From positions 38,936,001 to 38,969,000 of the forward strand of contig OZ286474.1 of assembly GCA_965644265.1 (NCBI GenBank): DNA of 33,000 nucleotides. Reading direction: 5' to 3'. The notes beneath the pieces are model-generated. The model saw only the letters and a list, made by a program, of their open reading frames with translations. It ran no database searches and was not told the origin of the DNA. Shown here in pieces: positions 14,013 through 29,249 of this stretch (the first letter of the stretch is position 1; every line of letters starts with the position of its first letter). The stretch is from Glycera tridactyla (taxonomy: Eukaryota). A program made the translations under genes and the position numbers.

Positions 14013-14206
14013 NNNNNNNNNNNNNNNNNNNNNNNNNNNNNNNNNNNNNNNNNNNNNNNNNNNNNNNNNNNNNNNNNNNNNNNNNNNNNNNNNNNNNNNN
14101 NNNNNNNNNNNNNNNNNNNNNNNNNNNNNNNNNNNNNNNNNNNNNNNNNNNNNNNNNNNNNNNNNNNNNNNNNNNNNNNNNNNNNNNNNNNNNNNNNNNN
14201 NNNNNN
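14013..14206. other. Assembly gap (194 N) flanked by CAC/ACC-rich simple sequence
   Basis: Run of N. Confidence 1.
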
Positions 14207-21299: not shown

Positions 21300-21705
21300 T
21301 GCATACTGCCTGATGATGAAGAGATTTGGGATCCTTGCAATAAGAGATAATTCACTGACCATACAGCCACAGGCACGAGGCTTCTCAGTTGGGATAAAGA
21401 GATTCCCCTCATCCTAATAAAAATTGGGTGAAGTAATTTCTGGGGTATATTTCACGGATTAAACCTCTAATCCACACACTGCATCATCAATCTGTGCTTG
21501 AACATGATTTTGAGGCTTGAAACGTCTAAATATTGTGCTCCGAATACGGATTTTCCCTCATCCGATGATCCAACATCAAATAAATTAATCGTCACTGACC
21601 ACACCGAAACCTATCACAAGTGAATACCAATCTCTCAGCAATCAAAAAGAATTTGCACCAAATGTCACTCCTGATCATCTCGCAATTTTACATGACAAAC
21701 ACGAC

Positions 21706-22636
21706 TAGGCCTTGAACGATTCGCCGATACACTCACTGATCGATTATTTTTTCCCTATCGGCCTGGTCACGATACACCTGAAAAATTCCACGATATATCG
21801 TCAAATTGTTTAATTGATGAGAAACAGCAAGAAATACACCTCAAACGTGATAAATCCATTTGTTCGAGGGCGCAGCCATGTTGCTTTGACACCTGCACAG
21901 CCAGAGTGAATGAACCAATGAAAATACGTCTTCTGCGCATCTTGTTGTCATCTCGCGCTTGTGAGAATTATTTCACGAATAACAACTCAAATCAATTATA
22001 TTTTCATAAACTAGTGCCAGTAAAATGACGGGAAGCGATTTGTATACGTATTTGAGCTCTAAAATGAATATTTCTTGCTGTGTTTCGCGCTGAAAGGCAA
22101 GCAGTGTGAAACGCACGTGGTGTTATTCCGACGGGCGCCATCTTGATTTTTCACTCACTCTTGGTCACGACACATTTTTTCACCTCACCATCACGAGAAA
22201 ACTATACAATATATCACGAAACTGTTTCCGCAGTATGTTGCGCAATGTTACCGGAATTCGTCTGATATAGAGATTTGTTCAGATATCACCTCTATTCATT
22301 GAGTGGCGGAAGGGCAAAGCCACGAAGGTCTCATTTCTTCAGCAAGTCCCTCATTTTCGCCCAATTGACACCACATCTTTGGCCGCAGGCAAATATCATT
22401 TAAATAAGTCTCATCAAAAATCTGAGGTGATCATGGTCTTAAGCATCCCTCAATCTGCCTGCGTGAATTTTTTGGCCAGTTTCTGACTATCATTACGAGT
22501 GTGGGGCGCCAGGAAAGAGAAGTAATTTCTTGATGTTTTTGCAAAGAATTTGAGATATATCGTGGAGATATCGTATCGTGAGCAGCGTATCGCGATACGT
22601 ATCGATTCGTATCCGTGGTAAATCGTTCAAGGCCAA
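21706..22636. mobile_element. Non-autonomous hAT-like element, 931 bp
   Basis: Perfect 8-bp TSD AACACGAC (21698-21705, 22637-22644). TIR TAGGCCTTGAACGATT / AATCGTTCAAGGCCAA (15/16). Subterminal CGATA/TATCG motifs and inverted CCACGATATATC. Confidence 0.93.
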
Positions 22637-23136
22637 AACACGACCCAACTAAAGCATAGTATTCGTTCAAAGAGAAAATTATTTTCAGTCACTCAAAAAT
22701 GCAGTGCATATAAGATTTGGGGTTTGGACAAGCTGGAGCGTAGAACACATGTCTGCCAATCAAGGTTGAAAAGCAATTAAAAGACTTTCGGGTGTGCAGT
22801 GTGGAAGTGTAAAAGTAGCCCAGGTTCTCGATTATCCACTACAACAGAATATGGGTGGGGCCGGAAAATCTGTCCTGGCTCTGTTTAACACTCACTTGTC
22901 CAGTCATTACCGCCTCATCATTTCCCAGTTTGGAATGATTAGGAGCTCATGCTGGCGAAATTAGGACTCAATCAATGAATGTGACCAGTAAACAACACAG
23001 TCCTATCTCTTTTCTACCTCATTACATCGAGGACTGACCTGCTAATATATATCTTACGGTCAGGTGATCAGGAGGTGGCCGTGCTAGAAATTAGGATGGA
23101 ACTTCTGACCTCTTATTTTACTGGCAACTGGCAGTA

Positions 23137-23974
23137 AAGTAAAACCTCTCCTGAGCGACCACCCTACTCAAGAAATTAATGCACTCTTCAGGGATTTCTG
23201 TAAATGTGTTATATTTCATCAAATTCGCCATTGGAATGTTGATACAACCAGGATTTGTTATGGGAACTGAGAAACCCATACATATTATTACGGATCAGCT
23301 TGTGAGCTTTCAATTTGCAAAATATTCGGTCACCCCAACCACCTGTGAAGCCGTTGCCATGGCAACAAAATAAAAAAAAAATCATTCAATTCTGGGTTGT
23401 TTTGACCCAGCGCAGGACCAATCAATATAGGGTTTATAGAATCACATTTGGTACACAATTACTCAATTTATGCTGCTTTTCCCCACTTTGCTGGCACAAT
23501 CTTTAGTTAGGTCCTGAAATTCAAGAAAATATCATTTCTATGATGATTTCAAGCAGGATTTTCACATTTTCTGCAACAGAAGTAGGTTTTGTGAGAAATA
23601 TATTTCCTGATGAAAAATTGTGCCAATGCCTGATTATCAGGCCCTCATGGCTGCAAATTTTGATATCAAATTTTTGATGGTCCTGCGCTAGGCCTGAATA
23701 TATAAATTTGATTATAATTCCCACTTTTGTTGCCATGGCGATAGGTCAGAAGTGATAGCCTCGAATTAAATTTTGAACTTGCAATTTGGGGACATGTGTG
23801 CCCTTCAAGAAGATGTATGGTGTTTCATGCATCATTCGGAAAGTTGGGACACACAGCACTGGTAAATCAACACTTTAATGACATTTTCAGGGATGGGTAA
23901 AAGTGCATTAATCACCTGTCATGCAAAAGTGGTCACTCGCAAAAGATGGTCGCTCGACTAGGTCTGGCCTCCTG
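23137..23974. mobile_element. Degenerate pogo-like MITE (GCGACC/GGTCGC motifs) interrupted by a TTAA-flanked element
   Basis: AGTAAAACCTCTCCTGAGCGACCACC at the left. AAGTGGTCACTCGCAAAAGATGGTCGCTCG at the right. Confidence 0.5.
23180..23907. mobile_element. TTAA-flanked element with TGCACT termini (728 bp)
   Basis: TTAA|TGCACTCTT...AAAAGTGCA|TTAA. Internal inverted GTTGCCATGGC motifs. Confidence 0.55.
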
Positions 23975-25012
23975 ACATACATATACATAAAGAATACTGA
24001 CATTATCGTTCACTGATGAACATCGATACTTGCCAAATATTTCACAAAATGCACGCAAACGGTATAAAACAGAAATATACATATGTGATTGAGATTACAA
24101 AAATCTGCAGATTTGTGAACCAATCACATCGCTGATAGTTAGTTCCCCTTTCTATCATACAATGGCTGCCCTCTGAGAGCCTCCAAAACATCCTAGGATC
24201 TGAGAAATAATTGTATCCCTACTGCTTGTGGAATTGTCAATGATGTTGAGAGACAAGACAAAATCACCAGGAGCTTGTACATGTGACAACTTTGAACTTG
24301 AATATTATGCAATCCCCTTTATAAAACACCTTTTCATTGAGCCCACCTGTTCCATTGGGCTGTCCAGAAAAAAACCCTTCTGTGATGATGCGATGCATGG
24401 ATCTACTGCTGGCTGGACAATTGCACCTATTTTTAGAACACTGCACACAGATTCATATAATCTACTTCTCTGTGATTTACTAGATTCATGGCTCATGTCA
24501 AAGCCAGGTCAAATGTCAGCTGTCGCCAGTATGATTACAGGGATGCCACAGCATAACTTTTCACAAAGCTTTTTGGCGAGTAACGACCATTATTCTTCAC
24601 CGGTTGCCTGTAGATTCTTGCATCTTTATGGCGCCATACTGTGAGGGAGTGTATGTACCGACTCCAGACACTTGTACAAAATCCTTTGAGAGCTTCACGC
24701 TTCACACATGAGACTAAGAACATTAACTGAATATATATACATATCTGCAGTTGAACCAAATCCACTTAGGGTTTTTCCTCACCAGAAACTTTGCCTATAT
24801 GTTCAACCCTTCACACATTGATAAATGCAAGTGCACTAAAACAGAATTTCCTGAAACCTGACCAAATTTCCTGAAACTACCTCCCCATACTTTTTAAAGG
24901 GCCAGATTTATAACTTTCAGCCCAATTTCCAAAAACTTTTGGATTTTTGAGTTTGTGACGAATTTCCTGAATTTCCGAGACAAAATGACATATAACGCCC
25001 CTGTGCATGACC

Positions 25013-25122
25013 GATTGATTAATTTGAATTTGTTGACATGGATGAACCCATATGTACGCTGTGGATTCCTGATCTATCAATGCTGCATGCTGTCTTCTGC
25101 AGACATCACTCACACAGCTGCT
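25013..25122 (-). mobile_element. Degenerate family R fragment
   Basis: GATTGATT tail..GAACCC..CTGCAGACATCACTCACACA. Confidence 0.6.
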
Positions 25123-25379
25123 GGCAGAGAGTCACTTCAGATCTACTGTGACTAGAAGGGTCCTCTCACGAGAGGTTTCAATCTCTTCATTCTTGCCTTT
25201 GATGTACAGTGGCTACTCATACATCCCCATTAATGACCATTTGCAAGAATACAGAGCTCTGTGATCTCTGCCATCATGCACTGCCGCCTTGTGATTATGA
25301 AACACACACTTGATACAGCCTCTAGTTTTTCCGTCGGAGACGGTACTATTTTCACTTTGGGATTCCCACTTAATCTAGA

Positions 25380-26090
25380 CATTACTATCGTCTTTTTCAC
25401 GGGGGCAGATTCGCCAAGATTTGACAATGTTTAATGCACATGTTCTGTGAGCGACCGTTTGTAAATGATCGCTATTAAATCATCAGAATCGAACTGAAGC
25501 TGCTTGAAAGATGTGTGAAATGTGTGAGAAACAGTAATTTTCGCGTGAAACATTGCCAAATTCGGTCATAGTAGATATACTGACCTTGTGAGAACGTTTG
25601 AAACGAAAAATATATTATTGAAAGCGACTCTTGGCGGATTAACAGAGCATCATTAGCGGGAAACCCCTCCGTGACGTCATATCAGCGTGGCCAAAGATTG
25701 CCGAACCGTACGCAAAAGACCCAAACACTAGCTGAGCACCAGCCGAATGATCCCGAACACTAGCCGAGCATTGCCGAATCGACTGTCAATGATTTCTTGG
25801 GTCATCTCCAAAAGTTTCGTTAGCGATTGATAGTTCACTATTTCTGGCGAATATACGATGGATTCATGCAATTTATACATGGGTCATACACAGCTGGATA
25901 TGAAATACTTCACGACTGTATGCTGCCCCCAGCGACTGTGGCCGGGATCCCTTCAATCACGGCGATTTTTTTCGTACACAATAGTAGAAGAAACACGTGA
26001 GCGTGAGCATTCTTCAAAGAGATGCGTGCGTAGTGTCCCCTGGCGGCGACGATGGGGAACTACACATTCTCGAATAATGGCGGGGAATTC
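25380..26090. promoter_or_regulatory. CpG-rich island, possible promoter / first-exon region
   Basis: High CpG with no bounding TIR or TSD found. TGACGTCA at 25672-25679, CACGTG at 25994-25999, CTCF-like CCGCCAGGGGACACTA on the minus strand at 26031-26046. Candidate minus-strand GT-AG intron at 25503-25584. Confidence 0.35.
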
Positions 26091-26117
26091 AAATTAAATT
26101 TTCGTTTTCTCAGTCAA

Positions 26118-26184
26118 TCTCTGTCTCTCTCTGTCTCTGTCTGTCTGTCTCTGTCTCTCTCTGTCTCTGTCTCTCTCTCTCTCT
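26118..26184. repeat. (TC)n/(TCTG)n microsatellite
   Basis: Directly visible. Confidence 0.97.
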
Positions 26185-26537
26185 CCACACCATGCATTTT
26201 CTCTTTTTAAATTACCACCTCTCCGCTGTAGATCGACGACCATCCTTCTTTTTGAATGAATTTCTTGTTTATTACTGACACATACTTTGTTCACAACCAT
26301 GATGCAGATGTGACAATGATGCAGCTGATCCAACCCTTGACAAACAAGAATATTGAGATTGAAAGTCTTTTATTTTTAATCACAACGGATGCACAATGGT
26401 ATACACGATATAAATGATCAAATACACCCGTAATGGGTGAAATCATGTAATTGAAAGTAATCAGATATATTGTATATCGATTGACGAAAATTACAGTGAG
26501 TGATGATTACGATGTTTGCAATCAACCAATGAGAAAA

Positions 26538-26950
26538 GTCTACAAGATTCTGCTGCTTACCTATAAATCACTGCACAACAGGGCACTGAAGTATATTCAA
26601 AACCTACTAAAAGTGCACAGGCAATCTGGCATGAGTACACGATCCCACCAAGCAATCATCCTGAAAGTGCCTCCAAAGTCCCATCTCCGCACTTATTAGG
26701 GGACCGTGCATTTTACATAGTAGCACCCACTCTCTGGAATCTTCTACCAATCTCAGTCCTCCAGTGTGAAACCCTTGAAACTTTCCAGTCATGTCTGGAG
26801 ACGTAGCTCCTCATTGTCTTCAGGGCAGCATAGGAATGAGCCAAGAGAAGCTTTTCCAGTCATATGGCTGATCAAGCAAGTTCCTTTGAGCAGGGACTAC
26901 CCCTGATGATATGGCGCTATATAAATGCCACACATTATGATCATTTATCA
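26538..26950 (+). mobile_element. L2-clade LINE 3' end (ORF2 C-terminus plus 3'UTR)
   Basis: YKILLLTYKSLH..KYIQNLL..TRS...ILKVP...LRTY/GDRAFYIVAPTLWNLLP...ETFQSCLET with one 2-nt frameshift. This matches the L2 pattern FKILLLTYK..YGDRAF..AP.LWN.LP. Ends GCGCTATATAAATG..ATT-rich tail. Confidence 0.88.
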
Positions 26951-26954
26951 TATT

Positions 26955-26982
26955 GGGGGGTGGGGGGGTTGGGGGGGGGGGG
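26955..26982 (+). repeat. G-tract G6-T-G7-TT-G12
   Basis: Directly visible. Confidence 0.9.
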
Positions 26983-27323
26983 TCTTGCAAAAAATACCAG
27001 GATCCATGAAATTGCCATGATATTAATGGACAGCATCTTTGATAATGTTGATGGAATTTTCACCAACATGTGTCTCTGGGTGGTGTATCCATCAAAGGCT
27101 GGATATTGGCGAGATCAAAGCAGCGTCCCTGATTGTATCCAGGGATTCGTATCTGATGAATGAGGCCACTCATACACATGCAATATCATAATAGTACATG
27201 TGATCAAACAGGATGAGATTCATTTATACCCAGGCATCTGACCTTGACCCAATTATATATATTGATCAGCCAAGAGAAAACATGAAGATCGACTTATCAT
27301 GGCAACATGGCATATACCAGTAC

Positions 27324-27986
27324 AGTCGAACCTCTACAAAGACCGCCTTTGGTCGCATCAAAGAGTGGCCTTCATAGGGAGGTAGTCTTTACAGAGAGGT
27401 TATCTACTATTGAGAGTTGCGTGGTGTAGTGGTAGCGTCTTCACACTTGACCCAAATGTAGAACAGTTGTGGCTGCAGCTAGTCGTGGGATGGGTGACCA
27501 CGGCAGGGTGTGAGGATGCAGTGAGAAGCAGTATGGGCGAACCATACACTACACTAACAGTCACAAACTACAAGTGTGGTGTGGGGAAATGAGGCATGAG
27601 CTACACACCACCAGGGCTGGGTGATGGTGTGAGCACCTATCTGGGATCTGAAAACAATGATCCTAGGTCAGCAGTGGTGCTTTAATAAGTGCCTACAAAA
27701 ACCAGCTACACCGATACCCCTCCTCAGCATACACACACATGCAGGCACAAGAGAGGAGGTTCACAATTCAATCACAGGCAGAGGGTACCACCCTGCCAAG
27801 ATTAGACCTGTCACCCATGAATAGCTAACAGCAGGACTGGGAATGTCAGGACCTTCGTGCTCTGACAGTGGTACTGGACTGAGATCAGTCAAAACAGTCA
27901 ACCAAACCAAACCAAACCAAAATATAACATGGTTGCAGCTGAGGGTTTACTTTATAGAGATGTGGACTTTAGAGGAGGTTTGACTG
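27324..27986 (+). mobile_element. Family B MITE split by a SINE
   Basis: Left half TA|CAGTCGAACCTCT..GAGGTTATCTACTATTGA (to ~27415). Right half CATGGTTGCAGCTGAGGG..GAGGAGGTTTGACTG|TA (from ~27928). Confidence 0.85.
27416..27922 (+). mobile_element. SINE (~505 bp) with tRNA-like A box, 5S-like segment and (AACCA)n tail
   Basis: TGGTGTAGTGG at 27422-27432. TAGTCGTGGGATGGGTGACC at 27480-27499 (16/20 to 5S rRNA TAGTACTTGGATGGGAGACC). Tail ACCAAACCAAACCAAACCAAA. Confidence 0.7.
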
Positions 27987-27995
27987 TACTCTTAA

Positions 27996-29028
27996 CCCTT
28001 TGCGTCATGAAAGCCGTGACGTTGCGACTATTTGGCGTATGAATGCATCATGAGTGAGCCTTTGCTAGCATCGAGTGCGCCATGACGTGACAGCTGTCAC
28101 TTGCATACATTCACAAGCAGAGTCACGACAGAACATCAAGAAATTAGCGTTTCTTCTGAGGCGCCCCACACTCGCAATAATAGTTAGAAACTCACCAAAA
28201 AATTTGCCTGGGCTGATTGGAAGATGCTGTAATCGATGATCACCTCGGATTTTCGATCAGACAAGGGTAAATAGTATTGGCGAGCTGTCAAACAAGGGTG
28301 GTATCACGGGAAAAACGGATGAACGAGCTGAAAAATCATGACCTTGTCGGCTTGTCACTCACACCACGCCGAAAGTATAAGAGATATATGAATGAATTTT
28401 ATATCAAAAAAATCCTAGGAATATTGCGCAGAATAATGCGCAAATGATTTGATTCTATATCTTATAATTTTTCCGATGGCGGCCGTGGAACTTTCCGTGT
28501 TCCTTCCGTACCTCTCGTCTTCATTGCGGATTTCGATAAGATATATTTGTTTGATATGATAGTTGGAATAATAAATCCCGGAAATATGACGTATATTGGC
28601 TGTAAATCCATGGTGAAGACCAGTGCTATGAAGCGCCATTTGCCGGTTTTGGGCTTCCTTCTTGAGTCTAGACTCCCACAATTTCTTTGTGACGGATGTT
28701 GATACCGGCTTCCTCCAGCCTACTACGCCATCATTTCTTGTTGGGATCGCTGGGAAATCCTCCAATTATCGCCACAAGAACGGGTTCTTCACGTTGGTAT
28801 ACAGTTCATAGCGATATTCGAAGGGTAAGCCCTCCAAACCGTCGTTTCCGTGTAGTATATGCTTGTTCTCAATCGTGTTTTTTTGCGCCATGTTGTAATA
28901 CGCCATGACGCATCGCATGCATAATCTGCTATATGACGATATACGTCTTATGCATAATCAGCTGTATGTAAAAATACGTCTTATGCATAATCGGCTATAC
29001 GTCAAAATACGTCACATGGCGCAAAGGG
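27996..29028. mobile_element. Non-autonomous piggyBac-like element, 1033 bp
   Basis: TTAA|CCCTTTGCGTCATG...CATGGCGCAAAGGG|TTAA (13/14 TIR). CpG-rich. No DDD transposase motif recognised. Confidence 0.92.
28917..29015. repeat. 3 x 33-bp subterminal tandem repeat of the piggyBac-like element
   Basis: Units start at 28917, 28950 and 28983 (ATGCATAATCNGCT...AATACGTCTT). Confidence 0.92.
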
Positions 29029-29249
29029 TTAATGCTAGCAGTCAATACCATCAGCAGGTGTAGCTATCTAAAAGCTGGATTATAGATGAGAATGTCACCC
29101 TTCCTCTTCATCATTCTTTATACATGTTTCTGCTGGAGTCTCACAATAACAAATTTGATGGTTAGTTGGTTCATACAGTTTTCACTGGCATCAAGTACCT
29201 CTCAGGTTTCAAATAAAATGTTCTTATTCTTATTCTTATTCTTATGCCA

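Follow-up and report, generated by a model that had tools for sequence, protein, structure and literature searches.

The stretch analysed here, 33,000 nucleotides of the Glycera tridactyla genome (contig OZ286474.1, positions 38,936,001 to 38,969,000 of the forward strand; henceforth the window, with positions counted from its first letter), carries two short DNA transposons of different superfamilies, a hAT-type element (element A) and a piggyBac-type element (element B), that have an internal segment in common. An earlier reading made from the letters alone (henceforth the sequence-only reading) had pointed to this common interior and had offered three explanations: cargo swapped between the two kinds of shell, a third element nested in both whose ends have decayed, or a conserved functional module. 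The features of the window on which the analysis turns are the following.

21698-21705, no strand: left 8-bp target-site duplication of element A, AACACGAC; the 8-mers on the two flanks are identical.
21706-22636, plus strand: element A, a 931-bp non-autonomous hAT-type DNA transposon; boundaries from coverage by 29 other copies.
21975-22030, plus strand: about 55 nucleotides specific to subfamily A, located where the sister hAT subfamily E (locus L067) carries the shared segment's leftmost ~70 bp.
22031-22539, plus strand: shared segment in element A, the part that still aligns with family B (nhmmer with a three-consensus profile, E 4.6e-156).
22637-22644, no strand: right 8-bp target-site duplication, AACACGAC, identical to the left copy.
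27992-29032, minus strand: element B, a 1033-bp non-autonomous piggyBac-type element of subfamily B1, given here with its TTAA sites (27992-27995 and 29029-29032); approximate boundaries likewise from coverage by 29 other copies.
28130-28554, minus strand: shared segment in element B, composed of the profile match at 28130-28474 plus 28475-28554.
28917-29013, no strand: a subterminal array of 33-bp units in tandem (2.9 copies) that lies in an arm of element B and not in the shared segment.

Element A is bounded by 16-nt terminal inverted repeats, TAGGCCTTGAACGATT at 21706-21721 and AATCGTTCAAGGCCAA at 22621-22636, of which the right one bears a single mutation in the window copy (GGCCAA versus GGCCTA in the family, written AATCGTTCAAGGCC(T→A)A). 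The family ends, TAGGCC…GGCCTA, fit the hAT end type 5'-YARNG…. Among the family copies having both ends, 23 of 24 are flanked by an 8-bp duplication with at most one mismatch, and the duplicated sequence varies between copies, one duplicated locus excepted. The hAT-like shell with its 8-bp target-site duplication, as first described from the window, is thus borne out by duplications that these copies carry as their own. A scan for open reading frames (ORFs) found none of 130 residues or more in element A. Two of the A copies, on contig C4 at ~130.18-130.19 Mb and 134.03-134.04 Mb (loci L022 and L023; C1, C4, C7 and C10 are our handles for contigs), have the same 679-bp deleted form and an identical 8-bp duplication in opposite orientation, and about 6 kb from them lies a piggyBac-type copy that is identical at both sites (C4:130181896 and C4:134036703). 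The two sites look like a large inverted segmental duplication ~3.8 Mb apart, not like two separate insertions.

Element B reads TTAA-CCCTTTGCG…CGCAAAGGG-TTAA, with terminal inverted repeats of the piggyBac type (CCC…GGG) that are CCCTTTGCGCCATGTGACG in subfamily B1 and CCCTTTGCTGCATGCGACG in subfamily B2. The ends CCCTTTGC…GCAAAGGG were present in 28 of 30 B copies, 21 of these 28 having TTAA on both sides and the others being one base off on one side; the TTAA/CCC piggyBac-like shell seen in the window therefore holds for the family. Intact members of this family measure ~1126 bp, and the window copy has been shortened by two internal deletions. The ORF scan gave no long open frame in element B.

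The interiors of the two elements match well beyond chance. Self-blastn of the window aligns 22198-22537 on the plus strand with the reverse complement of 28471-28132 at 69.5% identity over 344 columns (E = 1.5e-31), and this pair scores 123 bits as against 17.9±2.2, with a maximum of 25.6, in 100 dinucleotide-preserving shuffles. The collinear match of ~340 bp at roughly 65-70% identity that had been aligned by eye is therefore genuine, and it passes the comparison with shuffled sequence that had been named beforehand as a check; only its extent had been underestimated. Majority consensuses were built from 19 copies of A, 9 of B1 and 12 of B2. Those of A and B1 have 511 bp in common at 74% identity (E 1e-85; B1 and B2 were both compared with A), and consensus-versus-consensus comparison of A, B1 and B2 revealed no further sequence in common beyond this 511-bp stretch. 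In the window's element B, profile positions 164-508 fall on 28474-28130 and positions 31-111 on 28554-28475. This copy, at 91% identity to the B1 consensus, has lost 53 bp internally where 28474 meets 28475 and a further 41 bp just past 28554; the alignment by eye had ended at 28480 because of the 53-bp deletion.

The segment reaches further in hAT subfamily E, represented by the copy at locus L067: the alignment of this copy to the profiles of B1 and B2 extends over ~580 bp (E 2.5e-94 and 2.1e-99, respectively). E has the same ends and arms as A and resembles the piggyBac family across the stretch where A has its 55 nucleotides, at which A and E are 42% identical. Since E matches family B over ~580 bp where A has 55 nucleotides of its own at the left end, the original shared piece measured ~580 bp, or ~61% of the length of the hAT element and 51% of that of the piggyBac one. 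By the same comparison, subfamily A replaced the left end of the segment later, in a second and smaller replacement within the same lineage. The observation is thus confirmed, with a segment larger than first described.

Both shells carry the segment at many places in the assembly (2.04 Gb, 207 contigs), where a first look returned 1,698 and 1,909 candidate copies for the two stretches. The genome was surveyed by motif pattern searches, which yield counts and matched strings. Two conserved segment motifs lie 68-82 nt apart at 156 places, the intervening sequence being of variant A, B1 or B2 or of the numerous variants C, D, E and F. A segment motif is followed by the hAT end 175-205 nt on at 213 places, with a constant span of 216-218 nt, and the hAT-linked matches listed (100 of 213) are all of variant A, C, D, E or F. 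The same motif is followed by the piggyBac end plus TTAA 235-236 nt on at 42 places, all of them B1 or B2. Segment variants sort completely by shell, and the distances from junction to end are fixed for each shell. The sequence-only reading had foreseen that the finding might dissolve if all other copies lay in piggyBac shells, the hAT copy then being a lone nested fragment; what we found instead were 213 hAT-linked against 42 piggyBac-linked matches, and no TTAA scar.

The edges of the segment tell the same two shells apart. At the left edge there were 319 matches, and the flanks among the 100 listed are piggyBac-type (including an abundant subfamily, B3), of hAT subfamily A, or of an E-like hAT variant, G, with a few truncated copies. 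At the right edge there were 322, of which the 100 listed comprise 91 hAT arms, 6 piggyBac arms and 3 truncated copies. The G left flank is tied to the hAT right arm or end at two places (C4:73117670 with 73118091-73118307, and C4:108034194 with 108033655). Neither a third shell nor a free-standing copy was seen among the ~200 junctions listed for the two edges, a profile search found no further context of the segment in ~300 kb of fetched sequence, and a metagenome scan gave zero matches to it. The segment edges have no inverted repeats, duplications or TTAA scars, and a search of A and B for a long internal inverted duplication gave short subterminal motifs only. With edges this bare, and neither free-standing nor third-shell copies among those junctions, nothing speaks for a third, nested element whose ends have decayed.

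In the 74 nt that could be compared, the B3 subfamily agrees with B1 at ~95% of positions (e.g. C1:41765322 and C1:79168182). It is dominant among the left-junction matches, but searches built on the two downstream segment motifs did not recover it; further downstream, B3 would either differ at those motifs or lack the sequence.

We next turn to the age of the common interior and the number of events behind it. Kimura two-parameter (K2P) distances over the segment are 0.16 between A and E, 0.15 between B1 and B2, and 0.32-0.37 between shells, so that the between-shell distance is twice the between-subfamily distance. Individual copies differ by 4-6.5% from their own family consensus, a range that is biased low because the sampled copies were chosen by similarity to the window. 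The sorting of variants by shell and the K2P distances together indicate one transfer, older than the subfamily radiations of both families, with separate amplification after it. We therefore favour, at a probability of roughly three in four, a history in which a single ancient copying event carried the ~580-bp non-coding segment between the ancestor of family B and that of the hAT subfamilies A, C, D, E, F and G, the segment having been a passenger ever since.

Such a transfer would have joined an ancestral piggyBac-type and an ancestral hAT-type non-autonomous element, in either direction. The most likely route, we infer, would be a double-strand break or excision gap inside one element whose repair synthesis switched to an ectopic copy of the other; in a variant of this route, one element would have inserted into the other and the inner element would then have lost its ends, with the same product. 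Because its ends were kept intact, the chimera would have stayed mobile in trans through the matching transposase. Both lineages would have amplified afterwards, reaching copy numbers of around a thousand or more, with the captured segment as a passenger. Cargo swapping between hAT and piggyBac shells, the first of the three explanations offered at the outset, is supported in that both shells are mobile and high-copy and hold the segment at a fixed internal position.

Several observations weigh against this history. No junction microhomology, nested-insertion scar or other repair footprint is visible; the arms of either family have no more k-mers in common with the segment than shuffled sequences do; and the extended homology of subfamily E is symmetrical, favouring neither direction of transfer. 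By definition the shared region shows no more than where the contents of the two families overlap, and a third source, now low-copy or lost, may have fed both families. Variants C, D, F and G and subfamily B3 are known only as match strings of at most 80 nt. Between B1 and B2 the segment is 87% identical and the arms 79-81%, which a passenger model does not predict, though repeat-rich arms with insertions and deletions may explain the gap, and substitutions are spread along the segment with mild unevenness (p 0.01-0.06).

The alternative that survives best is that both families took the segment independently from a third source, for instance a host locus or some older repeat, that has since become rare, decayed or disappeared. 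Sequence from that source could hide in the so-called arms, given that the shared region is an overlap only, and the segment motifs occur above chance in the arms of neither family. The segment was also not seen beside the piggyBac and hAT transposase frames detected on contigs C1, C4, C7 and C10, where coordinates were compared by eye, and it is therefore not native-looking in either autonomous partner. Nevertheless, the ~200 junctions listed consist of hAT arms, piggyBac arms and sporadic truncations only, and the ~300 kb of fetched sequence held no additional context. A third source also requires the same ~580 bp to have been captured twice, independently, when a single transfer suffices, and we consider it improbable.

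Transposases that could act on the two shells are plentiful. Dozens of uninterrupted frames were found, piggyBac ones of ~500-660 residues (some of ~1,060) and hAT ones of ~600-1,100 residues; many uninterrupted frames match DDE_Tnp_1_7 (best E 8e-93), and frames with the hAT dimerisation domain abound. As predicted products, these piggyBac and hAT frames could be the mobilisers of A and B, and cut-and-paste transposons may still be active in the genome. The ~1,060-residue piggyBac frames may be fusions or domesticated genes. In the by-eye comparison of C1, C4, C7 and C10, copy and frame came near each other only twice: on C4 a hAT-type copy lies 3.2 kb away from a piggyBac frame, and on C7 another such copy lies 4 kb from a weak fragment. 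Both were taken for mere neighbours, not autonomous partners. On C10, at ~104,404,700-104,453,700, stop-containing piggyBac transposase fragments recur at least seven times with a spacing of ~8.8 kb; these fragments are a tandem array whose unit contains a broken piggyBac gene.

A further question is whether selection has kept the segment, as a transposition enhancer or stabiliser that serves two transposases or as a regulatory element. Its fixed position has been retained through all subfamily radiations of both families, the higher B1-B2 identity in the segment than in the arms points the same way, and in all four of the consensus or representative sequences compared, three blocks of 12-15 nt do not vary, alongside the mildly uneven substitution density. 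The stretch GCCGCCATCTTG (GGCGCCATCTTG in family A) resembles the animal YY1 site. Moreover, internal sequences are known to tune the mobility of MITEs (miniature inverted-repeat transposable elements; PMC9921582). Against this stands, first, the hAT family, where A and E are 93.7% and 94.7% identical in the arms and 85.0% identical in the shared segment, the segment thus evolving faster than its surroundings. In addition, the first ~70 bp were replaced in one subfamily and 94 bp were lost from the window's B copy, the divergence of copies from their family consensus is no lower in the segment than in the shell, and no RNA-family, coding or structural signal accompanies it. Taken together, the B1-B2 identities and the uneven density are weak hints at most, and the evidence points to a neutral passenger. 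The conserved functional module, third of the original explanations, is on balance not supported, and we regard such a role as quite improbable. A longer shot still is a portable "fitness cassette" exchanged between unrelated cut-and-paste superfamilies and aiding propagation under either enzyme, whether as a transposase-independent enhancer of excision or integration, as a stabilising structure or as a shield against silencing.

Three small public runs (one study, available as contigs) cover only the repeats of the stretch and give no evidence of expression; in element A their contigs are interrupted at 22030-22032, where the aligned segment has its left edge. Between the two elements the same short contigs reach high depth at 24655-25048, 25246-25442, 26822-27018 and 27216-27412, by far the highest at 26822-27018, with unique sequence not covered, and these four intervals are further repeat families. 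Elsewhere in the window, 14013-14206 is a run of 194 N, an assembly gap or masked stretch.

Least of all do we believe that the segment is a decayed protein-coding gene, such as a fragment of a Tc1/mariner-type transposase. By eye alone, reverse-strand peptides ('…APHT.N..QK…MITSDF…') resemble motifs of such enzymes, yet stop codons interrupt each of the six frames of the consensus segments, and a Pfam search with ten open pieces taken from the two window copies came up empty at E ≤ 10. When the consensuses were compared by blastx with DDE_3-type open frames of the genome itself, no hit fell below E = 1, and similarity between the shells is no better at the protein than at the DNA level. A Tc1/mariner-like coding relic was rejected on these grounds. 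An RNA gene or a short interspersed nuclear element (SINE) was rejected as well, since Rfam, searched at E ≤ 1, returned nothing inside or close to either element.

How does this arrangement compare with known systems? Central cores common to different SINE families are found in CORE-SINE, V-SINE and Deu-SINE. As in these, a central module here sits in families whose other parts differ. Core SINEs are retroposons whose cores are conserved in very distant taxa, suggesting function, whereas the carriers here are cut-and-paste elements of the one genome examined, and the segment shows no excess conservation.

Among cut-and-paste elements, maize Ds elements have interiors of "filler DNA". Repair from an ectopic template has been proposed for the interiors of the P-MITEs of Anopheles gambiae (Quesneville et al., PMC1562414), and such gap repair is the accepted and usual explanation for foreign interiors of non-autonomous cut-and-paste elements, those of Ds elements, P-MITEs and Pack-TIRs included. 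Like P-MITEs and Ds elements, A and B have short arms with the terminal repeats and subterminal motifs of the family, a centre unrelated to a transposase gene, and amplification of the whole element with family-typical target duplications. Unlike in the Anopheles P-MITEs, whose interiors showed no similarity to one another, the interior here is common to a high-copy family of another superfamily. Animal Pack-TIRs have been attributed to gap filling and template switching (FoSTeST; Tan et al., PMC8277862). As in Pack-TIRs, Pack-MULEs and Pack-MITEs (PMC8277862, PMC2817404), a foreign fragment of a few hundred base pairs lies between intact ends and the chimera was mobilised and multiplied. Pack elements carry fragments of host genes and are mostly low-copy, whereas the cargo here is non-genic, apparently the inside of another transposon, and runs to thousands of copies. 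In grapevine, mPifvine-3.1 to 3.4 have the same terminal repeats and different interiors (PMC2817404); there, as here, ends and interior are separable, recombining modules, and our case is the converse, one interior with two unrelated sets of ends.

No description of an interior shared by hAT and piggyBac elements was found in the literature, a search that covered open-access text only and is no proof of absence. Interiors of chimeric origin, capture of the Pack type and families that have their ends in common but differ inside are already established, and the elements described here are an example of a known assembly route, not a new system. For annotation, any tool that sorts repeats by how similar their interiors are would lump these hAT and piggyBac families together or mislabel them, and repeat libraries for this genome should therefore split families at the segment boundaries. 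The finding would gain in importance should the segment turn out to affect mobility or the regulation of nearby genes. What it provides is a clean, high-copy case of non-autonomous DNA transposons built of separable parts, in which the ends choose the enzyme and the interior is swappable.

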